A DNA stretch of 64,000 nucleotides from Cyanophora paradoxa CCMP329. Its lineage: Eukaryota > Plantae > Glaucophyta. The notes under the pieces were generated by a model. The model saw only the letters and a list, made by a program, of their open reading frames with translations. It was not told where the DNA came from and ran no database searches. The stretch lies in assembly GCA_004431415.1 (NCBI GenBank), contig QPMI01000054.1, positions 62,001-126,000 on the forward strand, written 5' to 3'. The stretch's first letter is position 1, and the number at the start of each line of letters is the position of its first letter. Both the position numbers and the translations under genes were made by a program. Of the stretch, positions 21,749 through 60,304 are shown piece after piece.

Positions 21749-21752
21749 TATA

Positions 21753-22519: not shown

Positions 22520-22947
22520 TAGGGTTACCGTCCGACGGTCTGACGGTAATGTCGGTCCCCCAGGCTCCGACATCGACAATGTCGAATGTCAGGTGGATTT
22601 CGGTGCGATCCGACAGAGGGGGGGGGTAGGGGTTGACACGGGTTGTCTCCGCCGGCAGAATGCGCCATAAATTATAAATTAAGGCTTCTGGTGCTCCAGG
22701 AAGTTATTCCAAGCAGGTCTGAACACATTCCCCACCTTAGGAATGCATTGAAGCGTGGGTTCTAGGTGAGCGACGGGCCGGCGACGGCAGGGAGGGGGCG
22801 AGAAAAGCATTAAAAACTATTTAAAAATGCATTATTTTAATCATTATTTTCGACATGTCGGTCGCCCTCGCCGACACCGCACCGACATTCGACATTGATC
22901 ATGACGACCGTTTGACGAAGCTCCGAATTGTCGGTGCGGTAACCCTA
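22520..22947. mobile_element. hAT-like MITE, family 1
   Basis: TIR TAGGGTTACCG/CGGTAACCCTA; 8-bp TSD GTACTCGG at 22512-22519 and 22948-22955; homologous to 24328-24764. Confidence 0.9.
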
Positions 22948-22966
22948 GTACTCGGCCATGGCCAGA

Positions 22967-23354
22967 TAGGGTTGGGCTTTACCTTTACCGGTAAACAGAG
23001 GTATTACCTTTACTCGGTAATACTTTTACTTTACTCGGACCCCGTCCGAGTACTAGTAATACCCGAGTAAAACAGGGGGGGGTATACAAGCTAGCAGCGT
23101 GGGGAGTGCAGTTTAACGCACATAGCGTTGCTCGCGTTGAGTAATCGGCTAAGAGTAATGCCAGAACATGTATTGAAGCTTGTTGAAGTGCATGGGGCGC
23201 TCTTGGGGTGGGGAAATGGGAGGCCCTATGCCTGAGGGGGAGGGGGGGGGGCAGGGCCGCAGGGGGGTTTACTCGGTAATACTCGGGGTAATACTTTCAT
23301 TACTTTACCCTTTACTCTGCCGGACGGGGTATTACCCGGGTAAGCCCAACCCTA
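22967..23354. mobile_element. hAT-like MITE, family 2
   Basis: TIR TAGGGTTGGGCTT/AAGCCCAACCCTA; 8-bp TSD TGGCCAGA at 22959-22966 and 23355-23362. Confidence 0.9.
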
Positions 23355-23389
23355 TGGCCAGAGTCGCCGCCGTGGCCCAGTACTAGTAC

Positions 23390-23660
23390 TACCGTAGAAC
23401 ACAATATTAAGCTTAAGGTCTGTACTTTATTATGTCGTCCCGAAATTATGTCGCCTCGGACGGGACAAAACGACATAATTTGGGGACGTCATAATACGGG
23501 CTCGCTAAGCCGCCCCATACAGTACCCCCCAATTTTACCGCCCCATACAAGCCTGAAAATTTCATGCCGACATAATTTGGGGACGTCATATTTCGCATAG
23601 AGAAGGCTCGGGTTTTCAAACGACATAAATTTGCATGACATAATATTGTGTTCTACGGTA
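23390..23660. mobile_element. MITE, Tc1/mariner (pogo/Tc2-like) type
   Basis: Perfect 20-nt inverted ends TACCGTAGAACACAATATTA ... TAATATTGTGTTCTACGGTA. Confidence 0.9.
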
Positions 23661-24327
23661 GTGGGTCCGCCGGGCCGTGAGTCCCGTGACTCCGTGGCAC
23701 AGACTCGCACTACTAGTATATATGCTGCATATATGCATGAGCTTTGCCAAGTTGACAATGCAATGCCAACTTGCCAAACTTGAAAAAGTTGCCAAGCCTT
23801 GAAGTTGCCAACTTGAATTGGTTAGTCCGTTGGACCGGCCCGGGCCGGCGCCGGCGGCACCGGGCAGGCCGGCGGCCGCGGCGGTACTGTAGGTCCAGTG
23901 TAGGACGGCTTTTTTAGCCGTAATTTTAAATTGCCGTATAAATTGCCGAGAGGCCGAATTCGGCAATTCTAAGCATCGGCAATATTGCTGGGGGTAGGGG
24001 TGTTTTTAGGCTGCCATAGAGCGAAAGCCTGGATATCGATAATGGGCTGGATTCGGCAATTTATCGCCACGGTTTCGTAGTACCAGTCACTGAGTACAGA
24101 CTGTACAGTAGTGAGGGAGCGCTATCATACCGTAGTACCGCGGTACCGCCGTCACGGCGCCGTGATACCGGTACTCCGGCGGTAGTATACGCGCTACTAT
24201 AGCTACCGGTAGGCTGGCGCTCGCAGCGCGAGTCTCGCCGCGAGAGCGGCTCCAGCTGCAGCTGCGCATGCAGCCTGCAGGCTGCAGCCTGGCAGCTCAC
24301 TGAGCTCAGCGGCTACCGTACCGTAGA

Positions 24328-24764
24328 TAGGGTTACCGTATGTCGGAAATGTCGGTCACCCACCTTCCGACATCGACATTAAATATTGTCGAATGTCGGT
24401 TGGATGTCGGTGCGATCCGACAGAGGGGGGGGTAGGGGTCATCTCCGCCGGCAGAATGCGCCATAAATTATAAATTAAGGCTTCTGGCGCTCCAGGAAGT
24501 TATTCTAAGCATGTCTTAACACTTTCTTCACGTTGGGAGACCATAGGAGCGTGGGTTCTAGGTGCGCGACGGGCGCCCAACGGGCCGGCGACGGCATGGA
24601 GGGGGCGAGAAATGCATGCGCATTAAATATATATAAAATGCATTATTTATATTAATATTTCCGATATGTCGGATCGACATTCGGTCACCCTCGCCGACAT
24701 CGTACCGACATTCGAAATGTCGAACCGAATGTCGGAGCTTCGACATGTCGGTACGGTAACCCTA
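24328..24764. mobile_element. hAT-like MITE, family 1, nested in the end of another element
   Basis: TIR TAGGGTTACCGTA/TACGGTAACCCTA; 8-bp TSD ACCGTAGA at 24320-24327 and 24765-24772. Confidence 0.9.
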
Positions 24765-25040
24765 ACCGTAGAGCAGGAAAATACTGGACGCAGAAAAATA
24801 CTGGAGCCCGAAATTAGTGGACCGAAAACTTGACTCACTCCACTAATTTCGGGCTCCAGTATTTCTCTGCTGCTAAGCTGCCCCATACAGTACCCCCCAT
24901 AATTACCGCCCCATACAAGCCTGACAAGATTTTGGTCCACTAATTTCGGGCTCCAGTAGTTTGCCTAATTAAGGGAGGGCCAAGTTTTCTAGTCCACTAA
25001 TTTCCGGTCCGTTGTACAAATATATACAGATCTACCGGTA
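24765..25040. mobile_element. Probable TA-CCGTAGA-type MITE interrupted by the hAT-like element
   Basis: Reconstructed left end taccgtaga; internal inverted aatactggagcccgaaattagtgg motifs; shares the core ccccatacagtacccc...ccccatacaagcctga with 23390-23660. Confidence 0.55.
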
Positions 25041-25691
25041 GACTCTGAGATCTAGCTATAGATTCTATTCAATGATTCTCTAGTCAGCCCGGGCCCCGGC
25101 CCCCGGGCGCCCCGCCGCGCCGCCGGGCCGCCGGCCATCCTGGCAGGCCGAATTCGAACTATACTAGTACTGTACTCCGTATAGACCGTATACCATCACA
25201 CGTGCACGATATAGACCGTATATGCATGTAGCATGCAGCCCCGCGCGTGGGCCGCGGGTGGCGTTCGGGGCCGGTAGAAGCTCGAGTTCAGCTGCATCCA
25301 ACATGTATCATCACACGGTATACGTATAGCATGCAGCGCCGGCCTGCGAACCGGCCCAGTGCGGTGAATCAACCGCGGCCGTCTAGATCTGCCGCGTTCT
25401 GCGCATATGCATGCCTCAGTGCGGTGGCCTCAAGCATGCACATGCTGCACATCACACGTCGCGGCATATATATGCATATCCGTAAGTCGCCGTGGGGTAT
25501 CTCTTGTCCGCGTGCACGATGTGCATGTACATGTGCTCATGCATGCGCATATGTATATATGTGATGAAAAGCAGTGCCGCAGATCTACTAGACCCGCCGA
25601 TGCCTCGGAGACGGTGACTACGGCGCTTTCTTTGCTCACCGCGGCGGCCCGCATCCACACACACGGCCTGTACATGTATAGCTAGGTCTCG

Positions 25692-28600
25692 ATGCAAAGC
25701 TTCAACAAGGCGGTCGCAAGCAACAGATGGCCTGTAGCTAGGCCTGCGGCCCTCAGGGGCCTGGGCCGCACTGGCGAAGGCACTGATGCCACCCCCCTCG
25801 ACTCGCAATTGGCCGGCGCCAGCGCCTGTTGCGTGTGCGTTCTCTTCGTGATCAACATCATCGCGGCACCACGCACGATCGCAGCCGGTGCGAGCGCTCA
25901 TGATTATTCAACTTCGGCAGCGCACGCATCGCGAGTGCCGGGCGACCGCGCTCGTGCATGCAGGGGCCACGCTTCCGGAAGCTGAGGCGACATCATACGG
26001 TGTGGTGCTGAACGAGCTCGGGACCCCCCCTGGAATGCCGGCAAGGGCTTCCGCCGCCGGGGCCTTCTTCATCCATTCCGGGCGAACCTACTTCATGAGC
26101 GTCGGGGGTTCCACAGCCTCCAGCACGAGCGATGAGGTGCGCTTGACTTCGACCGCATGCGCATCGATGCCCCCTGCATACGCAAGACCAGCTCTCCAAA
26201 TCAATCGACCCTCACGGTCCGGTAATGCACCGGCCGGGATGCAGATTTGGGTCTATAGCTACAGCGAGTCGAAGACTTGGAGCCTCGCACCCGTGACGAC
26301 AATGTGGCCAATATCTGGCACGAAGTGCGCTTTTGACTCGCGATCGGGAGGAACTTCTTTCATTTACTGTGCGGGTGAGTACTAGCCCTACAGGTAGGCA
26401 TAATGTCATAGTGCCGTTGAACATCGCTTGATGAAGAGCGGCCTTGCAATTGCTGCTTGTGGACTCAACGCTGTGACCGGCCGCGGGGGCACGTATGCAG
26501 GTGGCACCTACTCCGTTGCATACGGCCAGACAAACTTCTGGAGGATTCCTAGCGCCTTGGACCGCTGGCCAGAGGTCCTGCCCAGCATGCCGACGACGAC
26601 CGGCATCAGCCAGCGCACCGGCCATTGTGCGATATCGATGCTATGTGTACTCGCTGTTTTAAGTTCGAGCTAGAATTCGCTGACCATGCTTCTTGCACCT
26701 GCAGGCTTAGCTGTTTTCAACGGCAGCGTCTGGGTTCGTTGAATGCGTTTGAACTTTGATTTGGCTTCCATTATCATCCGTATCATTTAGCTGCAAGCGC
26801 TTGCTTATGTTATGATGGTCGCAGGTCGCGGCGGGATTCGAGAACGGAGGTCGTCTCAACGACTTGCTCCGGTGCGTATAAGCCTGATCGTGAAGCTTAT
26901 ATTCGATAAATTTCCATAGTTAGTATCGCATGCCGGGCGCTTACCTCCTGAGGCAGGTATACTATTTCGAGCAGCAAATGGTCAACGGAGGTGCGACATC
27001 TCATGTTTTGCACACGAGTTCCTCTTTGTCAAGGGGGGGGGGGGGGGGGAGGCGGGGGGGGCGGGGAATAGTGGTTAGGGGATGGTTAGGGCGGGGGGGG
27101 GGGGGGGGGGTAGGGCAAGAGGAGGGAAGAGGGGGGGCGAGGAGGAGGGGGGCAGAAGGCAGAGCAGAGGTCAGCTGCCAGGCTGCAGGTGGGAAAGACC
27201 AGGGGAGAGCAGCGGCCAGGTGGAAAAGACCAAGGGAAGGTGTTGAGGCCCGCTGTGAGCTAGAGCTTAGCACTTATTTGAGAAACAAACATCTAATAAT
27301 TATTTAATTGCGAAACATTTGTTCTCTGGTGAATTCAAATCTGTTTTACAAGTAGCGACACTGTTGTTATATAGTACCTACGGGGGGTTCGCCGCACCTT
27401 AGTCTCTCGAAAACAATGAACAGATTCTTTTTTGTTGCGTCCGCTCTCAAATCATACGAACTGGCACTAATGAATTGTTAGCAGATTCCCAACGGAAATT
27501 CTCAAATGGAGGCGAGAGGAGGGGCCGGCTGCGCGCGCTCTGGAAGCCGCCTCTACATTTCTGGGGGTGGTGGCACGCGGTCGGACGACCAGTATTCAAA
27601 TATTTAGTGCTTCCGAAAATCCTCGTCAATCTATTCTCAAACTCATGTAGTTCGCGCAGTTATGTTGATCTTGCAGAGGGGAATCAACGCCGCTTCGTCC
27701 TCTTGACGGCTTGGAACCGCTATGTGTATCCATCATATGCGAGTGTTGTGCTTCCCGGTCACATTCTCGGAATCTGCTACGGACTTGTCATGTTGGTGCC
27801 CGGGCGTCCGGGTCCGACAACGGGTTTTCCCTTCACCGTGAAAATGTTCAACCCCGAAGGTAACCAAATTCGGACCTTCAAGCGGATGTACATCTCGCAT
27901 ATCGCCGAGTCGACGTCGCACTGCAGATGGCTCTGAGCTGTTTTCTGACCGAGAAGGCCTGTTTCCAATTTCGAAATCTGCCTATGATAGCCCAGCCTCC
28001 TTACATGAAAGCTCGTCGCACGACACCTGCGAGATGTACGTATTCGTCATATCCATTAGTTGAAACTCGTCAATCATGATCTGTGTTCGGCCTTCCAGAT
28101 TCGCTCTCGGCGGGTTCTACGAGGAGTCAACCAGCTTGGTCGCTGAAGCGTGGCAGATTGCAGGCAAGCTGATCGTGAAACGCCAACAGATGTATTGCAA
28201 TATATTACAATATAATAAAGGGATGATGGGTTTTCCTGCAGGGAAAGCTCCTGGAAGCGCATCCGGAGCATCCTTGCCGACAGCAACAGACTTGCAAGGG
28301 TACAGTCGGGGAGCGGCGCCAATGGCAAGTCGATGGCGAGCTGGCGCAACCTTGTTTTATGCTGCTGGGATCCAGAACTTAGCGCTCGTCGGTGGAGAGG
28401 GCATGAATTATGAGTACTTCACGGATGTTTGGAAGCTTGGCATTGGTGAGTCTGATTGCGGGTTTTGTGTTGACGTCTTCGTGATGTTCTGTGGGACTGC
28501 AGAAAGTGGAAACTGGCAGCAGGCTTCTTCGACAGCTGCTTCTGGAGGACCTGGTGTTCGCTGCGCCTGGGACGGGGCAGACAATATATATTGTCTACGT

Positions 28601-31600
28601 GCGCAGTGACACGTATCGTCTATGATCTCTTTATTCATGCAGCGTGCCAGAGACAACCTATTTTTGGAGACATCCAGTCTCGAGTTCACTTAATGATCGG
28701 ATATCCCTCCCTGCACCCCCGCGTTCAATGTCCCACGGATGTGCGTGCGCGAACGCGTCCTCTGCATTTAGTGTCTATTGAATTCTCGATTCCGAAACAA
28801 AAAAGTGTCCATTGATCTGAGTGTGGCTTTTTAGGCATGGCAGTTTACAACGGCAGCGTCTGGTATGCAACTGGATACAGTTATGTCAGCGGTTGGGTGC
28901 CTCGAAGCGATCTTCTGAGGTTGGGGCTCCCGGTCCTGCCATGATCTTGATCGATATCACTCATGATCGTGATCGTGATTAGCCATCTTAAACTGACCAA
29001 CTCGAGGTCCAGGTACGACATAGCTACATTCAAGTGGACGCATGCAATCGAGCACGCCTCTTCCGGAATCTTGGCTGTTATGCGGGCGGCCTGCGCCCGA
29101 GCTGGGTCGAAGCTCTACTTGTATGGTGGTCAAGGAGGAGAGGAAGACGGGTGGCCGCAACTCACCGCATTATACGAAGTTGATTTGGCCTGGGGCGTCC
29201 CAAAGAAGTACAGGCTCGTGGGAAACTATATATCCGGCTGCTCGGAATGTGCCGCCGGAGCATGCCGCGGCCTGGTGTTTCTGGTGAGAAATACTTATCA
29301 GTCGCCTGATCGAGGGCTCTACCTCGTAAATCCTATCGGTACTTTCTCGTATTTTACAATTTGGATGTGTCATCAACCTTAAGCTTCTTCCAGATGGAGC
29401 GGTGTTAAAGCGGGTTTGGAACATCCCGAGGCTCACAGACCTTGCGTGTGCGCCCGAAAATGCTACTTCTAAATTACACATTGCCCGACGTTTTTTTTGT
29501 GTCTCGTTTGACTTCAGACGATTCGGACGACGTGGCGTGCAAATTGTCTGCATACCCCGCTCCGAATTCTAGATCTCTGCTTTCTGTGCGTTCGTTCTGA
29601 CTTGGGGTGGTACGATGCAGCTATAGTGTGACTGGCAGAGCCGCCTACCGTGATTATCGAACAAACGTTTACCAAATAAACGGTGCTTATCGAAGCCTTG
29701 AAGCCGTGCTGCAAAGACGTGAACGATAGTCTTCTAATATTCATATGTTTTGCAATTGCTGACGGGTCGGTACGGAAGGATACTTGTCGGCTTTATCGGT
29801 CGCATGGACCGCGATGCTCGGCGCCGGGACCACGAACTCTACGTTGGCGCCCCTGCAGCGCGGCTCTTACGTGACCGTAGTATACTCCTCCGCCTCGCGG
29901 TCCTTTGGGCCCGTCTCAGTCGGACTTTCACCCGCGGATAGCGACACGCCCCCAATGTCTGAGCTTACCCTTTCCGTCGACGCCGCTTCGGTTTATATCT
30001 ATGCGGCGGGTGGAGCTTTCAACGTCTCGGCCCTCCCCAACGACGTGAACGGGGGCCGGTACCGGCTGCGTGTGTACAACGAGTACGGAGACGGTGCATA
30101 CTCGCCTGCGTTCGAGATCGAGCCGTGTGAGTGCTTCAACAATTGCCCGTCCATCAGTGAGCGTTTGTCGGTCGCACGCTAACTGCCAGCAAGGGGCTCT
30201 TATGGAAATCCGGCGTCCGGCGGCTGGCATGCAGGTGCAAGTTAACACGTCTACGATAATTTGTGAGCCTCCAGTCGATTTCGCGCAGCTTTCCTGCATG
30301 TGGTGCGAGCTTATCACTATACCGACAGCCTGGAGCTCGGCGCTGTGGTCGTTTGAGGCCTCTGTCTACCTGCTTCCAAGCGATAGAGACCGCGTTTCGG
30401 TGCGGGAGCTTAGAAACCCTCGCAGAAAGGAGTATCGTTAAAAATGCCGATGCGCGCATTCGTGCCGATCCATGACTCGGCTTTTTGTGCTCCCTAGTCG
30501 TGGGTGGGCGCACATCTGGGACGGGTGCTCGTATCTGCGGACGGAGGCAGTACCACGGTGTTTATCCCAAAGGAGACGACTCCAGGCGATTTCGTGATTC
30601 AAGTCGTCGACGGGGCCAACCGCGCGAAGAGCTGCCAGATGATTCCATTCGTAACCGTCATTGCTCCAGGTGAGCTCGGTATTACAGTAGCTATAGGATG
30701 CGTTTCCCAATCCGATCGGTTTTCGAAATGCAGATGAAATGTGGGAGCCGGTCATTCACTCCGTCAGCGGAACGAACGGCACCCGAGTGAGCCTCAGCAT
30801 TCGTTATTGGAGGGGCCAGAACGCGTCGGCAGTCGAGGTTAACTGCACCGGCGATGCGCGGATGTACATGACATCCACACCAGTGCGAGAAAGAGATCCG
30901 CCGGTGCTGGAAGCGTATGTTCCTGTGGAGCCGTCGTACACCGCTGGCTTCTACCTGAACTGCAGCGTCTGCCTTCGATCGACCGCCAACCGCGTTTCCC
31001 CCTCCGTGGATGTTGCCTCCGTCTGGGTCAACCCAGGTACGTATACGTATATGCGAACTCGCCCTGTTCCGTCGTCTTCCTATGCATAGCCTTGCGTCAA
31101 GGACCTTCTCTATTCAATCTCGGTTTTTCGAATGCTAAAAGCTTCTACTTCATACACAGCCGCTCCAAGCGCCCCAATCGTACTTTCTGCGTTGGCTTTG
31201 AATTCGACGGCCTCTCGGTTTCGCGTGGCGTTTACAGCGAGTCAAAACGTGACACTTATCGAAGTGGCATGCACGGGTCCTTGCGGAATGCAGGTGGCGC
31301 GCGTCGCAGCTTCTGATGTGAAAGCGGATGGCATCGGCGTCGAAATGAACGTCGCGCCTTCTTTTGCAAGCACCTGTGTGCTGGTATGCTCTGCGTCAGC
31401 CATCACGGTGGCGAACACCCACAACGCGAGTGTCTCCGTGTTGTTGTCTATGCCACTGGGTGCGTGAATGCATGGCATGCTGGCGAGCAGGATGCCGAAC
31501 TAGGAAAAAAACATTCCTAGGAACATGCGATACATTACAAAGCTACAGCATAGCTGGCGCCTTGCAGCAACCAACACATCCGTGGGGACGATCGCTGACC

Positions 31601-34600
31601 TCGACGTGTAATCGCGCAGCGCCGCCGTCGGCTCCGCTGGTGCTCGCGGCGTCAGCGACCAATGCGACACACGTGTCGCTGCAAGCAGCCTTCGCGGCCG
31701 GCCAGAACGTCACGGCGATCCAGTTTGACTGCGCGGGTTTCGGCGGCCCGTACCGGAGAAACGTGTCCGTGTCCGATCTCAACGCGGCCGGGTTCATGAC
31801 ACACATCGTCGTCGCCGCTTCGTATGGGGGCAACTACACGCTGGCATGCTCGGTGGCAGCTCTCAGCGCGGCTGGGCTATGGAGCAGCACAGAAACGACG
31901 CGCTTGGTGGTGGTCCCCGCGGGTGCGTCATGCGAAGCGGAGATCGTGATTAAGACGGGGCTAGGGCTTGGTTTGCGCTTGTCCCTTGCAGGCCGCGCGC
32001 TTTGCCGCGGCGCCGTCGTGGGGCGTGTACTTGCTCGAATGTTGAAGGTGGTATTTTCGGCGCGCAGAAACCCCTTCTGCGCCAACGATCGTCGCGGTGG
32101 ACGTTGTGAACTCGACGCTCCTGGTTCTGCAGGTGGCGTTCACGGGGGGACAGAACGTGACGATAATCGAGGCGAGCTGCACAGGCAGCGGCGGTGCATA
32201 CGTGTCGAGCGCGGCCGTCACCGATGCAGAAGCGGGCGGGGCCGGCGTGGGGTTGTCGGTGGCCGCTCCTCTGTCGTACATGAACTACACGCTCTCCTGC
32301 GTTGCGACGGCGGAGAGCGCAACGAGCCTTCGCGCGACAAGCGGCGCCACGCTCGCCACAATTCCAGCCGGTTCGTTCGGACGGGCATTCGTTCGATGGC
32401 CACGTGCACGGATAGCCGGCTAAGCTGTTCGTGCAATCGATTGGGCGATCAAGAGGACCAGACATCGGCGCTAGCCATCGCAACTTGTAGTTACGCCGAG
32501 CCGATTCCGTAAAAGCGGCTAATATAGCCCATCGGCATTGATTGGGCCTGATAGATTGACGTGATGCAATGCACCCGATAGCTGACCTTGACGTGTAATC
32601 GCGCAGCGCCACCGTCGGCTCCGCTGGTGCTCGCGGCGTCAGCGACCAATGCGACACACGTGTCGCTGCAAGCAGCCTTCGCGGCCGGCCAGAACGTCAC
32701 GGCGATCCAGTTTGACTGCGCGGGTTTCGGCGGCCCGTACCGGAGAAACGTGTCCGTGTCCGATCTCAACGCGGCCGGGTTCATGACACACATCGTCGTC
32801 GCCGCTTCGTATGGGGGCAACTACACGCTGGCATGCTCGGTGGCAGCTCTCAGCGCGGCTGGGCTATGGAGCAGCACAGAAACGACGCGCTTGGTGGTGG
32901 TCCCCGCGGGTGCGTCATGCGAAGCGGAGATCGTGATTAAGACGGGCTAGGGCTTGGTTTGCGCTTGTCCCTTGCAGGCCGCGCGCTTTGCCGCGGCGCC
33001 GTCGTGGGCGTGTACTTGCTCGAATGTTGACGGTGGTATTTTCGGCGCGCAGAAACCCCTTCTGCGCCAACGATCGTCGCGGTGGACGTTGTGAACTCGA
33101 CGCTCCTGGTTCTGCAGGTGGCGTTCACGGGGGGACAGAACGTGACGATAATCGAGGCGAGCTGCACAGGCAGCGGCGGTGCATACGTGTCGAGCGCGGC
33201 CGTCGCCGATGCAGAAGCGGGCGGGGCCGGCGTGGGGTTGCCGGTGGCCGCTCCGCTGTCGTACATGAACTACACGCTCTCCTGCGTTGCGACGGCGGAG
33301 AGCGCAACGAGCCTTCGCGCGACAAGCGGCGCCACGCTCGCCAGCATTCCTGCCGGTTCGTTCGGACGGGCATTCGTTCGATGGCCACGTGCACGGATAG
33401 CCGGCTAAGCTGTTCGTGCAATCGATTGGGCGATCAAGAGGACCAGACATCGGCGCTAGCCATCGCAACTTGTAGTTACGCCGAGCCGATTCCGTAAAAG
33501 CGGCTAATATAGCCCATCGGCATTGATTGGGCCTGAAAGATTGACGTGATGCAATGCACCCGATAGCTGACCTTGACGCGTAATCGCGCAGCGCCACCGT
33601 CGGCTCCGCTGGTGCTCGCGGCGTCAGCGACCAATGCGACACACGTGTCGCTGCAAGCAGCCTTCGCGGCCGGCCAGAACGTCACGGCGATCCAGTTTGA
33701 CTGCGCGGGTTTCGGCGGCCCGTACCGGAGAAACGTGTCCGTGTCCGATCTCAACGCGGCCGGGTTCATGACACACATCGTCGCCGCCGCTTCGTATGGG
33801 GGCAACTACACGCTGGCGTGCTCGGTGGCAGCTCTCAGCGCGGCTGGGCTATGGAGCAGCACAGAAACGACGCGCTTGGTGGTGGTCCCCGCGGGTGCGT
33901 CATGCGAAGCGGAGATCGTGATTAAGACGGGGCTAGGGCTTGGTTTGCGCTTGTCCCTTGCAGGCCGCGCGCTTTGCCGCGGCGCCGTCGTGGGGCGTGT
34001 ACTTGCTCGAATGTTGACGGTGGTATTTTCGGCGCGCAGAAACCCCTTCTGCGCCAACGATCGTCGCGGTGGACGTTGTGAACTCGACGCTCCTGGTTCT
34101 GCAGGTGGCGTTCACGGGGGGACAGAACGTGACGATAATCGAGGCGAGCTGCACAGGCAGCGGCGGTGCATACGTGTCGAGCGCGGCCGTCACCGATGCA
34201 GAAGCGGGCGGGGCCGGCGTGGGGTTGCCGGTGGCCGCTCCGCTGTCGTACATGAACTACACGCTCTCCTGCGTTGCGACGGCGGAGAGCGCAACGAGCC
34301 TTCGCGCGACAAGCGGCGCCACGCTCGCCAGCATTCCTGCCGGTTCGTTCGGACGGGCATTCGTTCGATGGCCACGTGCACGGATAGCCGGCTAAGCTGT
34401 TCGTGCAATCGATTGGGCGATCAAGAGGACCAGATCTAGACATCAGTGCTAGACATCGCAACCTGTAGTAACGACGAACCGATTCCGTAAAAGCGGCTAG
34501 CATAGCCCAGCGGCATTGATTGGGCCTGATAGATTGACGTGATGCAATGCACCCGATAGCTGACCTTGACGCGTAATCGCGCAGCGCCACCGTCGGCTCC

Positions 34601-50091: not shown

Positions 50092-51501
50092 TCATGCCCA
50101 ACTGTGATCCTGGAGGGGTATGACGAGGGACGCGTCGCCGTCCTGGGGAGACGGAAGGGGAAGAGAGGGGGGGAGAGGGGGGGAGGACAGGGAGTCAGCA
50201 GGGTGGGGCTACGTATAATTCGGGAAGATACAAGGGGGTACGCGAACCGCCAGCGACACGGCGGGGAGGTCGGCGTGGTCCACGTGCGCGCCGTGCGCGT
50301 CGAGCTCGTCCGCAAATGCCGTACCCGGCTCCCCCTCGTCCGCAGCGCTGTACGCCGTGTACCCCTCCGCTTCGGCGTCCTACGGGGGGCGGGGCGTTGG
50401 CCACGTCTCAAAGGGAGCGGGGTAGGTGGTCGGGTGGGGGGGCGGGGGGAGAGATGGGGGGTAGGGGGTGGGCGTGGGGGAGCTAGGGGGTACGGACCGC
50501 GAAGGGGTGCTCGTGGGGCGCCGCGCTGGGCCCGTCGAGGTACGCGTCGTCGCCGTACTTCTCCGCTATGAGCTGCGCCCGCTCGTCCAGGTGGCTGCTG
50601 CCGCCCGCGTCGCCGTTCCCGTCCTCGCCGCCGCCGCCGTCCTGCGCGCCGTCCGGTCGGCCAAGGGCGGCCCCGAGCGGCGCCGGAGCGGGGGGGGGGG
50701 GGGGGGGGGGGGGGGGCGCACGGCGCCCTGCGCCTGGTCCGGGTCGCCCTGCGCCTGGCTCGGGTCCTGCTGGTCCTCCTGCCACGCGCCCACTCGTCAG
50801 CGCCCGCGCGGCGCGCCGGCCGAGGCGGGCGGGCGCACGTCTGTTCCCTGCCCGCCGAACTTGCCGCCCTTCATCTTGCCGCCCTTCTTGCCGACCTTCA
50901 GCTTGCCCTTGGAGCCCTTCGTGCCAGGCTTCTTGCCCTTGGTGCCCTTCTTGCCAGGCTTCTTGCCCTTGCTGCCCTTCTTGGCGCCTTTCTTCCCACC
51001 CTTCTTGCCCAGCTGTTTGCCGCCCTTGCCCTTCTTGGCCAGCGCCTTGCCCTTGCCGCCCTTCTTGCCGCTCTTGAACTTCTTGCCGCCCTTGCCCTTC
51101 TTGCCGCCCTTGCCCTTCTTGGCCAGCGCCTTGCCCTTGCCGCCCTTCTTGCCGCTCTTGAACTTCTTGCCGCCCTTGCCGCGCTTGCCCAGCGCCTTGC
51201 GGCCGGCCTGTCGCGCGGGTGTGCACTTGTTCTTCGAGAGGGCTTGGAACAGGGCGCGCTCGCGCTGCGTCAGGTCCGGATCGTCGGGCACGCCGACCGC
51301 GCCGCTGCCGCCGTCGCCCGCGTCGTCCGGCTGGTCGTCTCCGTCGCCGCGGCCGCCGTGCTTGCCGAACCCCTGCTTCCCACCGCGCCCGCCTTTGCTT
51401 TTGACGCCCTTGCTGCCCTTACTGGAGCCGCCCTTCTTGCGCACGCCGCCGGTCCGCTTCCCCACGCCGCCGCGCGGTCTGCCTCCGCCGGACCGCGGCA
51501 T
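50092..51501 (-). CDS. Cluster gene A: Lys/Gly-rich basic repeat protein with acidic C-terminal tail
   Basis: MPRSGGGRPRGG...(KKGGKGKALAKK, KKFKSGKK, KGKKPG) spliced to EDQQDPSQAQGD...KYGDDAYLD...DAEAEGYTAYSAADEGE...DGDASLVIPLQDHSWA*. Confidence 0.75.
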
Positions 51502-51529
51502 CTCTGCAGAACAATGGCTTTAAGCCACC

Positions 51530-51819
51530 GAGATGAGCGATGTGCTGAGTCGTCAGGCTTCCACGCACCGGGCGGGCCGAGGGCGGCTTCTCCTCACGGC
51601 GGCGGTGCGCTCAACTCGGCTGGGCCGGTAGGCTCCCGGTGGATCGGGCGAGCACTCCTACGGCTCACTCGGAACCGAGGCCGGCACGATGAGCGACTCG
51701 CAAGTCTACCCCGGGTCGCTCACCAGAGGGGGGGCGAGAAGGGGGGTGCCGCTGCACTTTGCTTGGTGAAGTCGTTCAGTAGCTCGCCGGCTTCAGCTCG
51801 CTTCTTCGGACTCAGCTGG
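51530..51819. promoter_or_regulatory. Duplicated ~290-bp spacer between divergent genes A and B (copy 1)
   Basis: Homologous to 54491-54781; lies between oppositely oriented start codons. Regulatory role is inferred from position. Confidence 0.55.
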
Positions 51820-52139
51820 ACTCGGCGCCTGCGCTCTTTCAAGTTTGCTCCAGCCGCTGTCCTCGCCGCAATCGGGATTGGCGCTGTCACTTGGAGCTAG
51901 CGCTTCTAGCTTCGCAATTCGAGAACCTTCGATCCGAGACTCGCGGCTGCGCGGGTGCGCTAGATAGCCTTTGAATCCAAAGCGCTAGCTCACTGATAAA
52001 CTGTATGCGGGGCGCTAGCATTCGATTCTCTTTAATTTTTCAACCTTTTAAATTTTCATGCTGCAGCTGATCAACGTGCCACGGTGCAGGAGCCGCAGGG
52101 GCTGCGTCGACGTCGGCCGGACGCAGACTCCGCGATCGG

Positions 52140-52792
52140 ATGGAGAAGGAAAAAGATAAAGGGAAGGATAAGGACAAAGATGGGGCGAGGTTCGACTGCA
52201 CGCCGACAGAGGTACGCTTCGCTTGAGGTTTGCCTTAGGCGCCAGGATGTTCCAAAATCTCGTGCTGCGGCCATGCCAACGACCCACCCCCAACAGCTTG
52301 TACGGTTCACGGAGCCGAACGGCGCCGGTTCGCCCCCCGGCCCCCCGGGCCCGCTCCCCGCTGCGAAGCTCGACCTCGATATTGATGCTCGAGCCAAAAC
52401 GAGGCTCGAGCTTCGACTTGGCGAGCTCTGACGTCGCCGCGGCGCGCAGCGAAGTGCCGAACTGCGAAGAAGGAGGCGGCGTGCAGGACCGACCCGAACA
52501 GCGGCGCCTGCGCTATCCTGCACGTGGACGCCGCCGCCCAGCGCGTGTACGAGTACGCCTTCGACGAGGGCGAGGGCGCCGCCCTCGACGCCGGCGACGA
52601 CGGCTCCGCCCTCGACGGGCCCGGCGAGGTGCCCCCCTGGCCTGCCGCTCGGCCCCCGCCCCCAGGCCCCTCACCCCGCGGCAGGCGGATGCAGAGGGGT
52701 ACGCGGAGGGCGGGGCGGGGCCGTTCGGCGGGGCGGCGGCGGCGCTCCTCTTCCTCCACGACGCCCCCGCCGGCCTCGAGCAGCTCCTCTAG
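52140..52792 (+). CDS. Cluster gene B: small 4-Cys domain plus acidic tail ending EQLL
   Basis: MEKEKDKGKDKDKDGARFDCTPTE|LVRFTEPN|AKCRTAKKEAACRTDPNSGAC...YEYAFDEGEG...|...GPFGGAAAALLFLHDAPAGLEQLL*; paralogous to the C-terminus of gene E. Confidence 0.75.
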
Positions 52793-53082
52793 CCCCGCCC
52801 GCCCCTGGGGATCCTGGGGGGCCCATGGCCAGCACCATGGCAGGTCCGCCATGCACCAGGCCATAGCCTGAAATGTTTAGCGTCAGAATAGTGTGCTCCA
52901 CTCTAAGTTCTAGAAGGTAATTCGCTCTAGATGAGGTGTTTTAGCGGTATGCAACGTATGAATGTCCAGCCGCTGAGCCTCTTGAATCAAGCATGATATT
53001 GATCAGGAAACAAGCATTCTAAGAGCCCAGCAGCGAGGGGAGGAGGGGGGGGGGGAGGGGCGGGGGCGGAGGGCGGAGGGGG

Positions 53083-54400
53083 TCACAGGAGGTGGTCCAG
53101 GTGGAGGGCCCCGAACGCGGCGGCTACCCCCCCGTCGGCTTCCGCGTACCCGTCCCCCAGGGACGCCGGCTGCGCCCCGGGCGCGTCCAGGTCCTGCGCC
53201 CCCCGGAGCCCGTCGGCCGGGGAGGGGTTCGGGGTCGGGGCCGGGGGTACGGCGCACCGGGATCGCGAGGTCGCCGGCCGCGGCGTCTGCGGCCTCGTCG
53301 ACGACGAACGCGTACGAATCCAAAATGCTGGACACCCCTTGGTCTCCGCCGCTGTCGTCCCCCTCGCCGCCGCCGCCGCTGTCACTGCCGCCGCCGCTGC
53401 CGCTGTCGTCCCCCCCGCCGCCGCCGCCGCCGCCGCCGGCCATGTCGGGGCACAGGGCCGGCTCGGCCCCCCTGTGCTCCGTGACGCGCCCGTTCGTGCA
53501 CTTCAGGTTCCGGTCCGCCTGCCGCGGCCCTCAGCGCGGGGGCGCCCGCGGAGGGGCTGGGGGGGGGGGTGCCTGGATCGCGAAGTGGAACTTCTCCCCG
53601 TCGAGCTCTCCGCAGCACGCCATCGCTTTCTGCGCGGCGGGCGCTCTGTACCCCCTGCCGCTCCACCCCCCAACCCGGCCCGCCGCACCTCGCGCCAGGC
53701 GGGTACCATGCTTCCGTTCTGGTTGTTGCTGCGCGCGGCTCCTCAGCGCGGCGGGCGGCAGGTGGCGGGAGGGGGTGCGGGTCTTCGCGGGAGGGGGGTA
53801 CCTGTAGGGGAAGACGATGTCGTTCTTGACCATGACTTCCTTCCCGCCGATCGTCGCGTTCGCCAGGATCTGGGGCCGGGCCGCGTCGCCGATCGGGGGG
53901 AGACGGGGGGGGGGGGGGGGGAGTCAAGCTGCGCACGGGTACGGGGGTCTTTTCGGGGTTAATGCAAATGTAGTTCTTGTCCGCGAGGATCTCTGCGCGG
54001 GTCCTGTCGGCGGCGCACGGCGGCGGCTTTCGATTGAAGGGGCGCGGGCGGGAGCGCACTCCGTGTCACGGCGGCGACGGCGCGAGCGATGTGGGCAGGG
54101 TACACCTTCTCCGTCATGCGCTGTGGGCCGGCGATGGTCAGCGGGCGGGCGGCGGCTTAGGCTGCGGGCACGGGGGCGGCTCGGGCTGCGGGCACGGGGG
54201 CGGCTCGCCTGGTCGAAACACGCGGAACTCAAAGTGGTGGGCATCGACTTTGAGCAGTTTTCTCTCTGCAACGGGCTTTGCATGAGTGGCAGCGCTTCCG
54301 AAGTTTGCGGAGCGCAAAGCGGCCGCACCGAGCCTCGGCCGCGGCTGCCCTGCTGCTCATCCGTTCCATCGCCGCCCTGAGCTTGCTCCTCGTCGCCCAT
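53083..54400 (-). CDS. Cluster gene C: 6-Cys domain protein plus acidic tail ending DHLL
   Basis: Spliced ENCSKS...ACFDQ...YP...C...PVP|ILANAT...AWRE|KAMACC...KFHFAIQ|...KCTNG...LDSYAFVVDE...LHLDHLL*; shares intron positions with D and F. Confidence 0.8.
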
Positions 54401-54490
54401 GTCTCCGCCCAAGCCGGCGCCGCCGCTGACACCGCCGCGCAGCCTGCCTTGGCCGAGCTATCTCTGCTACAACGGACGTAATCCAGATGA

Positions 54491-54781
54491 GAGATGAGCG
54501 AGAAAGAAACATGGCGTCCGACTTCCACGCACCCGGCGGGGCAAGAACGGCTCCTCCTCACGGCGGCGGTGCGTTCAACTCGGCTGGCCCAGTCGGCGCC
54601 CCGTGGATCGAGCGAGCACTCCCACGCCTCACTTGGAACCGAGACCGGCACGACGAGCACTCCTTGTCTACCCCGGGTCGCTCACCAGAGGGGGGGCGAG
54701 AAGGGGGGTACCGCTGCGGTTTGCTTGGTGAAGTCGCTCAGCAGGTCGTCGGCTTCACCTCGCTTCTTCGGCCGCAGCTGG
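54491..54781. promoter_or_regulatory. Duplicated ~290-bp spacer between divergent genes C and D (copy 2)
   Basis: Homologous to 51530-51819, same orientation. Confidence 0.55.
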
Positions 54782-54894
54782 GCTTTTAGGGTGCGCGGGA
54801 AGGCCCCGACGCTCTCTAGCCGCTGTCCTTGCCGCGCTCCGGCGGGTTGTGGTCGCTGATGCAGGTGGCAGTTCCGGGCCAACTTCTGGCCGCC

Positions 54895-55995
54895 ATGTCG
54901 AAGCCGGATCTTCTTGCGGGGATTCCCGTGCCTCCTATCAAAAACTGCACGCAGAGTGGGGAACTGCCGAAGCCTAAGGCATCCGTATGCCTTGATCAAA
55001 CGTACCTCAAGGAGAATTACCCGGCGAAGCCATATGGCACCTTCGACATCGGAAGGAGTGCGTTGCAGACCAAGCGACTCGCCCCTGGCCTCCGCCAGGC
55101 GCGGGGTGTGTTCGGAGGCAGTCGCTGATGAAGCTGCCCGCAGTGATTGCGGACATGCACAACAAGGAGTGCACGCAGGGCAGTTGGTCTTTCAAGGTCC
55201 CGGTTCCGGTGCGCCGGAGGCCGGAGCCGCGTGGCGCTGGGTTGCGGCCGTCGCGCTGAGGCCGCTCGGCCCGCGCAGATCCTGGCGAACGCAACGTATA
55301 AGGGAGACGAAGTCACCGCGTCGAAGCCCGAGAACCCGAGCGAGCCGAGCATCGTGACAAAGGTCGACAGGGGCGCCGCGAATGGCCTCAAGGCGTGGCG
55401 GGAGGTGCGCGGCTCTCCTCCCGCCAGCGGCCGCCGCGTGCCGACGCGCGCGTCCTGCGCAGAAGGAGGTGGCGTGCTGCAACCCGAAGAAGTTTCACTA
55501 CGCCATCCAGGTCCGCGGCTCCGCCCCGCACGCTCCGCGGCAGTCGCCCTCCCCGCACGCGCCCCATCCGCCGCCGCTGCCGCCCTCACTCCGCGCGCAC
55601 GCGCGGGGCGCAGGACTCGCGAGGTGACGTGAGGTGCACGAACGGCAAAACGACCAAGCAGACGAAAACGTGGCTGGCGGTCGACAAGGGCCAGGCCCCG
55701 AAGGGCACGATCGCGGCGATCAAGGCGAAGATGGGGCTGAAGCACGTGGAGTCGTACTCGGCGCACGTGAGCGAGGCGGCCTTCGTCGACGAGGGCGACT
55801 TCGCCGCCGACGCCGTGCGCCGCCCCCGCGCCCCGCCCCGCCCCGCCCCGCCCCGCCGGGGGCGCCCCCTCACCGGATGCGCAGGGGGCCCTGGAGGGGG
55901 ACGCCGCGCAGGACGGGGCGGGGGCCGACGAGTCGGCCGCCGACGCCCCCGACGCCGCCCTCGCCGCCTTCGACTCCTCCGAGCACCTCCTCTAG
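54895..55995 (+). CDS. Cluster gene D: 6-Cys domain protein plus acidic tail ending EHLL
   Basis: MSKPDLLAG...KNCTQ...VCLDQTYLKENYPAKPYGTFDIGR|...CTQGSWSFKVPVP|ILANAT...AWRE|KEVACCNPKKFHYAIQ|...CTNG...KHVESYSAHVSEAAFVDE...FDSSEHLL*. Confidence 0.85.
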
Positions 55996-56138
55996 GGCCC
56001 AGGCCCCCGGGCCCCGGCCCCGCCACGCTCCACTCGGCCCGTCGGCTCTGTAGAACTGCGAGTCTGGCGCGTGTAATGTATGTCATCGTAGCTTCGCCAT
56101 CTCGCCGCGGCGCCGCGGCGCCACAGCTGGGAACTCCG
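55725..56138 (+). repeat. Left arm of ~414-bp inverted repeat (3' end of gene D)
   Basis: Near-identical reverse complement at 58996-59409, covering tail exons, an intron and the 3' flank. Confidence 0.92.
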
Positions 56139-56722
56139 CGCCGGGGATCCTGAACCAGGCTGTAGCTTGCGTGGGGTTCAGGAGGCCCTAGGGCTGCGGG
56201 CGCGGCTGCCGCTGCAGGCCATGCCGGCCCATGCAATCGAAACGCTAGCCCCGGCACCGTTGACGCCACCCGGCGGCGCCGACGTCGTCGCGTACGCCGG
56301 CGCCGGCGCCGGGCGATACGGCGGCGCGCGGCGGCCCACACATAAAAGCCACGCCTTCAGCTTCGACGCGGACGATGAAAACTCATGCATGCGCATATAT
56401 ATCATGATCATGAGCGACGAAGCGGCCTTCACCAGGGGGCTCCCGCGAGGCGTACCCCTCCCATCTTCATCAGCCTGACAGCTTCTGCGAAGCTCAGCGT
56501 CTTCCTTTGCCGACTCTCTGGATTTCGCCATCTCTGCGGGACTGCTTGACCGCGGTTGGTGTCTGTCGGCCGGCCGCGGGGAGCAGTGCCCTCAAAGACC
56601 GACCACGCCGGTGCGCCGACCCGGCGCACGTGCCAAGTCGGCGCACGACCCGAATCGATGAAGCTGATGAATTCCGTGCAGGCGCGGGGCTCCGCCCGTA
56701 GGAGGCCGGCGAGGTCGGTTGG

Positions 56723-58599
56723 ATGGGTGCGCTGTTGTCGCTCGCGCGCGCCGCGGACGACCTCCGCTTTGAATGACGCCTGCGCAGACGGGGATCCACA
56801 GGATGGCGGGGCGGAGGACCCGCAGCAGCAGGACGGCGGAGACCCGCAGCAGCAGGACGGTGGAGACCCGCAGCAGCAGGACGCGAGCGGCACGGACGGG
56901 CAAGAGCAGCAGGGCGGCGCCGACGGCGGACAGCAGGAAGCAGCCGCGTCCGGCGGCGAACAGCAGATGAACAGCGAGGGCGCGCAGCCCGATTCCGGGG
57001 ACCAGCAGATGCCGCCCGAATCGAACCCCGACTCGGAAGCTGGCGGCTCGCCCGGCGGTGAGCAAGCTGGCGAGGACGGCGGCCAGCAAGCTGGCGAGGA
57101 CGGCGGCCAGCAAAGTGGCGAGGACGGCGGCGAAGCACCGCGGCAACAGGAGCGTGGCGGCCGCGGCGGCAAGGCTGGCAAGGGCGGCCGCGGCGGCAAG
57201 GGCGCGAAAGGCGCCAAGGGCAGCCGCGGCAGCAAGGGCAAGGCGCTTGCGAAGAAGGGCAAGGGCGGCAACAAGTTCAAGAGCGGCAAGAAGGGCGGCA
57301 AGGGCAAGGCGCTGGCCAAGAAGGGCGGCAAGGGCAAGGCGCTGGCCAAGAAGGGCGGCAAGGGCAAGGCGCTGGCCAAGAAGGGCGGCAAGGGCAAGGC
57401 GCTGGCCAAGAAGGGCGGCAAGGGCAAGGCGCTGGCCAAGAAGGGCGGCAAGGGCAAGGCGCTGGCCAAGAAGGGCGGCAAGGGCAAGGCGCTGGCCAAG
57501 AAGGGCGGCAAGGGCAAGGCGCTGGCCAAGAAGGGCGGCAAGGGCAAGGCGCTGGCCAAGAAGGGCGGCAAGGGCAAGGCGCTGGCCAAGAAGGGCGGCA
57601 AGGGCAAGGCGCTGGCCAAGAAGGGCGGCAAGGGCAAGGCGCTGGCCAAGAAGGGCGGCAAGGGCAAGAAGCCTGTCAAGAAGAGCGGCAAGGGCAAGAA
57701 GCCTGTCAAGAAGGGCACCAAGGGCAAGAAGCCTGTCAAGAAGGGCACCAAGGGCAAGAAGCCTGTCAAGAAGGGCACCAAGGGCAAGAAGCCTGTGAAG
57801 AAGACCATCCAGAAGCCTGGCAAGAAGGGCGTCAAGCAAGGCAAGCAGGGCAAGCAGGGCAAGCAGAAGATGGCTGCCCCCGACAAGCACGCCATGCCCG
57901 ACGACCAGGTGCGCGCCGGCGTGGCGAGGGCGGGGGTACCCTTGAGGGAGCGTTGCGGAGCCGCTGACGGGCCCCCGGCAGGTCGAGAAGGACGGACCCG
58001 TTCTGCAGCCGGGCCCCGTCGACCAGGTCCGCCCCCCGCCCCCCCCCCCCCCCCCCCGCCCCGCACCGCCCCGCACGCCGGGGCTGACCTCGCGCCGCGC
58101 AGTCCGACCTGGGAGACCCGGCCTTCCACTGCACCATGGACGAGCTGCTTCGGTACGGCACGGGGAACGCCGGTGCGCCCGTCCCCCGCACCCGAGCTCC
58201 GGCCGCGCGACGCCGGCCGACGCGCGCTCGCGCGCCCCCCGCAGCAAAATGCGTGGCGGACAAGCAGAAGATGATGTGCGACCCGAGCATGGGGACCGTG
58301 CCCGAGGCCTGCGCCCAGGCGCAGGCGCCGGCTCCGGCGGAGCGGCTGGACGCGTACATGCAGTACGCCTTCGACGGGGACGAGGGCGCCGCCTTCGACG
58401 CCGCCGCAGACGACGGCTCCGCCCTCGACGGGGCCGCCCAGGTGCCCCCCGCCCCTCGGCTCCCGCCGCCAGGCCCCTCACCCCGCGGCAGGGGGAGGGC
58501 GAGGGGTACGCGGAGGGCGGGGCGGGGCCGTTCGGCGGCGCGGCGGCGGCGCTCCTCTTCCTCCACGACGCCCCCGCCGGCCTCGAGCAGCTCCTCTAG
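56723..58599 (+). CDS. Cluster gene E: acidic Q/D/G block, (KGKALAKKGG)n basic block, 4-Cys domain, acidic tail ending EQLL
   Basis: M|DGDPQDGGAEDPQQQ...; K/G repeats; ...FHCTMDELLRYGTGNA|AKCVADKQKMMCDP...AC...LDAYMQYAFDGDEG...LLFLHDAPAGLEQLL*. Start inferred. Confidence 0.8.
57301..57803 (+). repeat. 30-nt coding minisatellite: 12 perfect copies (KGKALAKKGG) then 5 variant copies (KGKKPVKKGT/SG)
   Basis: agggcaaggcgctggccaagaagggcggca x12 at 57301-57660, then agggcaagaagcctgtcaagaagggcacca-type units. Confidence 0.98.
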
Positions 58600-58995
58600 C
58601 CCCGCCCGCCCCGCGGGAGCTCGTGCGGGGTACGCGCACACGTTGCGGCATCGCCTCTCTCAACGCCCCCACTGGGCCACTTCAGTCTTTTTTGTAGTCC
58701 CACCGTATGCATGGCGGCTCCCTCTGCAGTGCTTGTGCAGTCAACTCATCAGTGGCATTCGCTTTCTCGCCGAGTGGGTCCGACGGGCGCCTCCACTTCG
58801 CCTGATTCCCCCTCCCATCCCCGCCCCCCGGGCCGACGCGGACACTCGGGCGCGCCGGGCGCGGGCATGGCCCCCCGGGCTGGCACGGCAGCGGAGCTCG
58901 CGACTCGTACTTCTAGTTCGCCGAGTCGGCCTCTGGGCCTGGGCCCCCGCCTAAAGCCAGACCAGGACGACCAGCTCCCGCCCTCCGAGACTTCC

Positions 58996-59409
58996 CGGAG
59001 TTCCCAGCTGTGGCGCCGCGGCGCCGCGCCGAGATGGCGAAGCTACGATGGCATACATTACACGCGCCAGACTCGCAGTTCTACAGGGCCGACGGGCCGA
59101 GTGGAGCGTGGCGGGGCCGGGGCCCGGGGGCCTGGGCCCTAGAGGAGGTGCTCGGAGGAGTCGAAGGCGGCGAGGGCGGCGTCGGGGGCGTCGGCGGCCG
59201 ACTCGTCGGCCCCCGCCCCGTCCTGCGCGGCGTCCCCCTCCAGGGCCCCCTGCGCATCCGGTGAGGGGGCGCCCCCGGCGGGGCGGGGCGGGGCGGGGCG
59301 GGGCGCGGGGGCGGCGCACGGCGTCGGCGGCGAAGTCGCCCTCGTCGACGAAGGCCGCCTCGCTCACGTGCGCCGAGTACGACTCCACGTGCTTCAGCCC
59401 CATCTTCGC
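58996..59409 (-). repeat. Right arm of inverted repeat (3' end of gene F)
   Basis: Reverse complement of 55725-56138 with few substitutions. Confidence 0.92.
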
Positions 59410-60304
59410 GATCCGCTCCCTGATCCCCTTGCTGGCCTTCATGGGGCCCGCGCGCTTCGGGGCCGCGGCGGCGCCGCCCTCGCCCTCCACTTGGATGCCC
59501 AGAAACGCGTTCTGGTCGTCCTGCTCCGCGCCGTTCGAGCATTTGATGTCGCCGCGCTCGTTCTGCGCCCCGCGCGCGTGGCGCGGTGAGCGGGGCAGCG
59601 GGGGCGTGGCGGGGCGGGGCGGGGCGGGGCGGGGCGGAGCCGCGGACCTGGATGGCGTAGAAGTACTTCTTCGGGTTGCAGCACGCCACGACGGACTGTG
59701 ACGGGCGCCCCGCGCGGCGCACGCGTCGGCGGCGGGCGGGCGGCCGGCGGCGGGGGCGGGCCGGGGCTGCGCACGTCGCGCCACGCGGAGAGGCCGAGCT
59801 TGTCGCCGGGCTCCGCCTTCACGAGGACTTTGCCCACCTTTTTGACCTCCACCTTATTGACGGTCGCGTTCGCTAGCACCTGCGCGGGTCCGGTCGCACG
59901 GCCGCGGCGGCGGGCTTCGGGGCCACACGGCTCCCGCCCAGGGCGCACCGGAACGGGGACCTTGTACGACCACTTGCCCTGGGCGCACTTGAGCCCGTTT
60001 TTCTCGGCGATGACTGCGCGACAGCGGGCATCAGTCCGAGTCTCCGAACACACCCGGCGGCAGGTGCGCCCGCCGCCGGGCCGCCGGGCGGCCAGCGGCG
60101 AATCGTTCGGTCTGGAGGGCGAAACGCACTCCTGCCGAGGTCGTAGGTGCCGAAAGGGAGAGCCGGGTACTTTTTGAGCGTGAAACTCTGATCCAGGCAC
60201 ATGTCCTTAACTGGCACTGGCAAGACAAGGTTCGACCTATCGCAATCTTTATGATGTGCGTCGATGGGGATCTCCACAAGTTTCAAGAACGAGGGCGTGC
60301 TCAT
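59139..60304 (-). CDS. Cluster gene F: 6-Cys domain protein plus acidic tail ending EHLL
   Basis: MSTPSFLK...KDCDR...MCLDQSFTLKKYPALPFGTYDLGR|...CAQGKWSYKVPVP|VLANAT...AWRD|SVVACCNPKKYFYAIQ|...CSNG...; tail identical to D. Confidence 0.85.

Follow-up and report, generated by a model that had tools for sequence, protein, structure and literature searches.

A cluster of six adjacent genes, here called A to F, was studied at positions 50092-60304 of a 64,000-nucleotide (nt) stretch of the Cyanophora paradoxa CCMP329 genome (contig QPMI01000054.1, positions 62,001 to 126,000), which is referred to below as the window. Comparison of the genes with one another points firmly to a tandem family that has grown by local duplication and exon shuffling, in which an acidic C-terminal tail encoded by two exons has been joined to different cores. 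Our preferred reading, to which we would give a probability of about 45%, is that of an expressed orphan family of largely disordered intracellular proteins, in which the tail would be a flexible acidic arm with a hydrophobic tip read by a common partner.

Gene models and expression

Contig sets assembled from RNA-like reads of three studies (X1, X4 and X8), together with a DNA-like set (X16), were compared with positions 50092-56091; genes F and E lie outside this range and are known in the RNA from loose contig ends that were matched by eye. Each of the six genes could be rebuilt as an intact spliced open reading frame (ORF), in the order and orientation A-, B+, C-, D+, E+, F-. The same arrangement had been given in the original prediction, which was made from the letters of the window alone, and it stands on the spliced ORFs, the joints in RNA and the matches of B, C, D and F in EukProt. 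The models are as follows (lengths in amino acids, aa; CDS, coding sequence; UTR, untranslated region).

50092..51501, minus strand: gene A (CDS 51501..50095 plus stop), 348 aa, with a Lys/Gly polycation block, a short Q/D/G acidic block and an acidic tail ending ..DHSWA
51501-50838, 50777-50722, 50641-50497, 50378-50247 and 50141-50095, minus strand: CDS exons of gene A, with RNA joints in X1, X4 and X8
51569..51726, minus strand: 5' UTR exon of gene A and part of a leader common to A and C; intron 51504-51568 comes next, its joint (51503/51569) being present in three RNA runs
52140..52792, plus strand: gene B (CDS 52140..52789), 129 aa, with a short Lys/Asp/Glu-rich start, a 4-Cys module and a tail ending EQLL; EukProt P0005
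53083..54400, minus strand: gene C (CDS 54400..53086), 260 aa, with a short acidic start, a 6-Cys module (seven Cys), a Gly/Asp/Ser spacer and a tail ending DHLL
54895..55995, plus strand: gene D (CDS 54895..55992), 237 aa, with a 6-Cys module, a tail ending EHLL and six introns, five of them in the CDS and one in the 5' UTR (54790-54870)
56658..58599, plus strand: gene E (CDS 56658..58596), about 541 aa, with a Q/D/G acidic block, a Lys/Gly block, a 4-Cys module and a tail ending EQLL
56658-57908, 58103-58172, 58245-58441 and 58492-58596, plus strand: exons of gene E, from frame continuity and GTGCGC..GCAG introns
59139..60304, minus strand: gene F (CDS 60304..59142), 248 aa, built by homology to D, with a 6-Cys module and a tail identical to that of D

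Joints with GT..AG or GC..AG ends were present for A, C and D in X1, X4 and X8 and missing from the DNA-like X16. Gene A has four of them (one in its 5' UTR), gene C five (one being GC-AG) and gene D six, which account for all of its introns including the one in the 5' UTR. The junction of exons 3 and 4 of F is spelled by loose contig ends in all three RNA-like sets, and the 3' UTR of E by one such end in X8, while the RNA contig cover of B is thin and lists no joint. The RNA thus shows both transcription and splicing of A, C, D and F and transcription of the 3' end of E, so that at least four of the six genes are expressed.

The rebuilt model of C is identical to EukProt P0004 and has eight CDS introns, two of which are GC-AG (54121-54208 and 53519-53572); one of these was found directly in RNA contigs and the other comes from the exon model equal to P0004. 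Gene D corresponds to residues 13-249 of P0001, and RNA contigs place at least 54706-54789 in its 5' UTR exon. The start of P0001 is wrong, as that protein begins 12 codons upstream, within a part of D that the RNA contigs splice out (54850-54894). EukProt P0005 adds a mini-exon of 10 codons to our model of B, whose tail intron (52629-52684) has GT..AG ends. The last 214 aa of F are EukProt P0002, whose start is likewise wrong, lying at an internal Met so that the first 34 residues of F (60203-60304) are missing. In gene A the 80-nt intron 50642-50721 was deduced from an 80-nt shortfall in the RNA contigs, its GT..AG ends and the restored reading frame. It contains a 27-nt G homopolymer at 50690-50716 (poly-C on the gene strand), which would produce a poly-Pro run and a frameshift if it were exonic. 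Splice consensus and frame continuity are the grounds on which E is read as a single gene, and its start codon is putative; a word search with the acidic block of E found no database model of it.

Across the six CDS the G+C content is 0.86-0.92 at third codon positions (GC3) compared with 0.42-0.52 at second positions (GC2), and the codon-phase G+C signal shifts phase stepwise through the cluster, a pattern that short exons would produce. Most donor sites within the cluster read GTGCGC.

The acidic C-terminal tail

Genes B to F each close with a last exon of 105 or 108 nt that is entered in phase 0. The tails that were delimited on their own are the following; those of D and F lie in a repeat that is described further below.

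52530..52792, plus strand: tail of B, two exons, the last of 105 nt in phase 0
53083..53338, minus strand: tail of C, two exons, the last of 108 nt in phase 0
58334..58599, plus strand: tail of E, two exons, the last of 105 nt in phase 0

The tails share a layout in which an aromatic-acidic start is followed by an Ala/Gly/Asp linker and a hydrophobic tip ending in [DE][HQ]LL, with a net charge of -11 to -18. The final residues are EQLL in B and E, DHLL in C and EHLL in D and F; the original prediction had listed these three endings for five of the genes, along with LQDHSWA as the end of A. All six frames of the 64-kilobase (kb) window hold 2368 stops and 12 endings in LL-stop; [DE][HQ]LL-stop occurs five times, and these five are B to F. 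This terminal tetrapeptide has been kept across tail types that are otherwise only about 30-40% alike.

When leave-one-out tail profiles were compared with 1000 composition-matched shuffles, the real tail was equalled or exceeded by 8/1000 shuffles for D and by 0/1000 for both C and B (z 3.7-6.2). Pairwise local scores against 2000 shuffles gave z values of 4.0 (B-C), 2.6 (B-D) and 2.0 (C-D), and in hhalign comparisons of the 4-Cys with the 6-Cys proteins the tails aligned in register (P 0.006). By these profile and alignment scores, the three tail types (B/E, C and D/F) are homologous and not just similar in composition.

Modules upstream of the tail

The set of modules described in the original prediction was recovered in full: Lys/Gly blocks in A and E, Q/D/G acidic blocks (in E, A and C), a common 4-Cys module in B and as the third module of E, a 6-Cys module in C, D and F, and an NAT sequence in the last three. 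The Lys/Gly blocks of A and E are about 80% alike at the DNA level and lie on opposite strands; the block of E consists of 16.7 copies of a 30-nt unit with 98% identity. Their net charges are +62 in A and +97 in E, and the net charges of A and E themselves are +34 and +61.

Blocks of this size, which adjoin acidic blocks in both proteins, might point to nuclear or nucleic-acid-binding charge-block proteins, in which the tail would fold back on Lys-rich segments as in HMGB1, serving as autoinhibitor or built-in chaperone, or would bind histones by way of its aromatic-acidic motifs. The lack of a secretory signal is in keeping with such a role, as is a general resemblance of aromatic residues in acidic context to histone-chaperone and activation-domain motifs. 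However, the cores of B, C, D and F are nearly neutral, the Lys/Gly exons of A and E had only noise-level scores in Pfam, with no linker-histone or DNA-binding domain, and a conserved hydrophobic tip would be superfluous for plain charge shielding. We therefore regard a nuclear role as unlikely.

The four cysteines of B and E are spaced Cx8C and Cx8-10C, with the fourth Cys 16-17 residues upstream. Small Cys-rich modules that have no presequence and carry three Cys 8-10 residues apart might be taken for proteins oxidised in an organelle, for instance by a Mia40-type relay in the mitochondrial intermembrane space. This is very improbable, given that neither twin Cx9C nor twin Cx3C pairs are present, that no helix-hairpin is predicted (the AlphaFold model of B has weak strands only), and that long acidic tails and Lys/Gly blocks of 250 residues are unlike known substrates. 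An assignment to the twin CxnC (CHCH) proteins of that compartment was rejected on the same spacing, which lacks two Cx9C or Cx3C pairs.

The cores of C, D and F align over six Cys and a few motifs, a seventh Cys being found in C only, and [IV]LANAT stands at an exon start in all three. These cores are 37-47% identical, with a ratio of nonsynonymous to synonymous substitution rates (dN/dS) of 0.5-0.7, which indicates fast divergence with the cysteines retained. The net charge of the core is +1 in B, +3 in C, +10 in D and +9 in F. Profile-profile comparison matched the 4-Cys with the 6-Cys proteins only tail to tail, so that the cores would be unrelated and the tails common to them; the conclusion that the B/E and C/D/F cores have no detectable similarity is thus supported at the level of sequence. 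The original prediction of unrelated domains on a common C-terminal region accordingly holds in five genes. AlphaFold gave no confident fold for the two proteins that were folded, with predicted local distance difference test (pLDDT) scores of 29.8 for D and 44.0 for B.

Repeats, gene conversion and a shared leader

The following paired repeats were delimited within the cluster.

55725..56138, plus strand: inverted repeat arm 1, comprising the end of exon 5 of D with the adjoining intron 5 and exon 6, together with 143 nt of 3' UTR
58996..59409, minus strand: inverted repeat arm 2, comprising the tail and 3' UTR of F
51551..51819, minus strand: copy 1 of a leader/promoter repeat of 270 base pairs (bp), belonging to gene A, with 87% identity to copy 2
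54515..54781, minus strand: copy 2 of the leader/promoter repeat, belonging to gene C and overlapping the 5' UTR exon of D on the other strand

The 414-bp arms of D and F are 99.3% identical, with 100% identity over the 271 bp of exon, intron and exon and 97.9% over the 143 nt of 3' UTR, whereas the upstream exons of the two genes are only 52-73% alike. Since the identity covers an intron and part of a UTR while the upstream exons diverge, it marks a gene conversion tract and is not the product of selection. The tail of B and positions 58362-58612 in E have 91% DNA identity; the last exons are 95% identical, with one synonymous change outside the first 12 nt, the tail introns 84% identical, and the sequence beyond the first bases of the 3' UTR 56% identical. 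The dN/dS of the B/E tail is at or above 1, on very few changes. The inverted arms flank the whole of E, and recombination between them would flip E and leave D and F unchanged.

These observations could be explained by young orphan genes without a common function, their tails being alike through one duplicated 3' segment and repeated conversion. The reach of the fully identical D/F tract across an intron and, at 98%, into the 3' UTR fits this explanation, and so do the dN/dS values, which are not low either in the cores or (on few changes) in the B/E tail, the lack of homologues in a profile search and the lack of a predicted fold. On the other side stand the ORFs, which all six genes keep intact through 3-8 introns, the very high GC3, the splicing of A, C, D and F in RNA from three studies, and the retention of both the Cys framework and the terminal tetrapeptide between tail types too diverged for recent conversion. 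We consider it about as doubtful as the nuclear role; were it correct, the cluster would be an example of conversion mimicking functional conservation in orphan families.

Genes A and C, whose coding parts are unrelated, have a 5' leader and promoter that are 87% identical and a common 5' UTR splice donor. As the leader copy of C overlaps the 5' UTR exon of D, C and D appear to have a bidirectional promoter region in common. No promoter words were common to the six upstream regions beyond the D/F tract, and tblastn with all six proteins gave no additional copy in the rest of the window.

Searches for relatives

The family is real and undescribed and, on the searches below, orphan and taxon-restricted. 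A profile made from D, F and the first exon of F only was run against 1.84 billion representative proteins (a 17-row MAFFT alignment of exon fragments was smeared and was left out of it), and the real matches were confined to the D/F cluster and C (E 2.6e-8). A match to P0003 (E 1e-8), a protein of 1282 aa with 16 repeats and no Cys, was rejected as a spurious sum of weak repeat matches. Pfam gave no match at E up to 1, the Protein Data Bank (PDB) no sequence or profile match, and PADLOC no match and hence no known anti-phage protein; the single match in PHROGs was at noise level (E 0.05) and fell on the low-complexity tail. For Pfam, PADLOC and PHROGs, A and E were searched exon by exon. D and B had no look-alikes in the Atlas, and no exact product of B or C is on record in public assemblies. 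The earlier statement that no known family could be recognised is thus upheld by Pfam, PDB, PADLOC, PHROGs and the large profile search.

Localisation and sorting signals

Neither a hydrophobic N-terminus nor a transmembrane-like segment was found in any of the six proteins. All six are hydrophilic, and in A, B, C and E the most hydrophobic 15-mer lies in the tail itself, at its tip. In-frame stops stand upstream of the ATG in the RNA-supported transcripts of A, C and D (nine codons upstream in A), and the 5' UTR introns of A and D each end immediately ahead of the start codon. These stops leave no room for a missed signal-peptide exon in A, C and D. The original prediction had noted the absence of a signal peptide, which agrees with our results, and had suggested looking for overlooked signal-peptide exons in RNA, which the stops rule out for those three genes.

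It had further likened the proteins to thionin precursors in their logic and named extrusome or cell-covering cargo or defence effectors as possible roles. A thionin precursor consists of a signal peptide, a basic Cys-rich domain and an acidic C-terminal propeptide. By this analogy the cluster would encode secreted or extrusome (mucocyst) cargo precursors, with a Cys-rich or polycationic payload and a removable acidic pro- or sorting region. Even numbers of conserved Cys (4 and 6), the conserved NAT and Tyr in acidic context would suit such precursors, as would fast cores on a conserved flank, which are seen in precursors of toxins and antimicrobial peptides; Cyanophora also possesses mucocysts and alveoli of unknown content (PMC6704402). 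The analogy is weakened by the missing signal peptide and hydrophobic N-terminal stretch, by the upstream stops in A, C and D and by the lack of any Pfam thionin or defensin match. The charge neutralisation that it implies is found loosely in D and F (core +10 and +9, tail -14); it fails in B and C, whose cores are not basic, and in A and E, whose charge the tails are far too small to neutralise. Precursors of this kind now seem distinctly improbable.

Known C-terminal and sorting motifs were compared with the five LL endings and rejected. The acidic dileucine signals ([DE]xxxL[LI] and DxxLL) have an acidic residue four or three positions ahead of the first Leu, in the cytosolic tail of a membrane protein, whereas each of the five endings has it two positions ahead and no membrane segment is present. 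The endings EQLL, DHLL and EHLL are not the K/HDEL of retrieval to the endoplasmic reticulum, for which there is no signal peptide either, and the last three residues, QLL or HLL, do not fit the peroxisomal targeting signal type 1 (PTS1; [SAC][KRH][LM]).

Proposed role of the tail

Under our preferred reading of a disordered intracellular family, the tail tip would be a short linear motif at the C-terminus of a flexible acidic arm. A single common partner, such as an adaptor, a chaperone or a transport factor, may read this motif, with the result that different cores would be handled alike. Secondarily, the tail may shield basic segments. The points in favour are the tail homology beyond composition, the uniform last exon, the retained terminal tetrapeptide, the lack of a signal peptide or hydrophobic segment other than the tail tip, the orphan status, the fast 6-Cys cores with retained Cys and the lack of a confident fold.

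Several points weigh against this. The original prediction had extended the common tail to all six genes, which holds for B to F and not demonstrably for A. The tail of A did no better than its own shuffles (555/1000, z -0.2), was insignificant in pairwise comparison with any other tail and has no LL end; its composition is the same and a local ..AEGY.. motif lies beside an intron at nearly the same place, so that the likeness is an acidic one, with homology not demonstrated. The identity of the D and F tails, and much of that between B and E, is on the evidence of the tracts above owed to gene conversion and not to selection. In the large search a D/F tail was not enough to pick up A, B or E, and the silence of that profile on other tail-bearing proteins consequently says little. 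A docking role is argued from conservation and by analogy with other acidic tails that bear hydrophobic tips. The six conserved Cys are unexplained in a cytosolic protein and could mean disulfides and hence an oxidising compartment. Finally, low AlphaFold confidence from three or four sequences is no proof of disorder.

A bolder version is that the tail with its free [DE][HQ]LL is a new C-terminal address tag, routing unrelated cargo without signal peptides (polycationic Lys/Gly proteins and Cys-rich modules) to one compartment, for instance mucocysts or cortical alveoli, or into unconventional export. We rate this as a long shot, but if it were true the cluster would be the first set of the tag's clients.

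Setting and significance

The window has a G+C content of about 70%, and scans of it for tRNA genes and Rfam families gave no match. About 12 kb at 20000-32000 have a G+C content of 51-59% compared with about 70% elsewhere, with no ORF of 180 aa or more in 20.6-31.4 kb. Pfam searches of long ORFs in the flanks of the cluster and near the low-G+C stretch yielded nothing useful.

Of the three lineages with primary plastids, glaucophytes are one, and to our knowledge most of their lineage-specific genes are without an assigned role. The EukProt proteins equal to genes of the window are named tig00000204_gNNNNN.t1. Contigs named tig... are those of the improved C. paradoxa assembly, in which the G+C content is 67.6% and Augustus gave 25,831 genes, rich in introns (PMC6704402); these contig names also appear in an expression atlas of C. 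paradoxa (bioRxiv 10.1101/674762).

The cluster offers a clean example, for the most part backed by RNA, of genes born by the shuffling of modules, with conversion confined to the reused 3' coding module. This module is placed on unrelated cores, and two of the genes also have a 5' leader in common. If the tail is a docking or address signal, other clients could be sought by a simple rule (an acidic tail of about 60 residues, a last exon in phase 0 and a free ..[DE][HQ]LL), and tail peptides would be a handle for the protein that reads them.

Comparison with known systems

The closest likeness to thionin precursors lies in a Cys-rich core followed by a long acidic C-terminal region and in the tandem arrangement of the genes. 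Unlike thionin precursors, the proteins of the cluster have no signal peptide and, in B and C, no basic core, and the two groups are unrelated in sequence. Conotoxin superfamilies likewise combine a conserved flank with fast cores that keep their Cys, and they expand locally. In the cluster, however, conservation falls on the C-terminal part and is partly due to conversion, nothing in the sequences marks the proteins as secretory, and the cores are unrelated modules instead of variants of a single fold.

HMGB1 carries basic segments and an acidic C-terminal tail in one chain, as do A and E and, weakly, D and F, whereas the cluster proteins lack an HMG box or other DNA-binding domain and four of the six cores are nearly neutral. 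For the preferred reading, the tails of the ribosomal stalk proteins P1/P2 and of bacterial single-stranded DNA-binding proteins (SSB) serve as a working analogy for how the tail might act: there is no homology between them and the tails of the cluster, but they too would join an Ala/Gly-rich acidic linker to a hydrophobic C-terminal motif.

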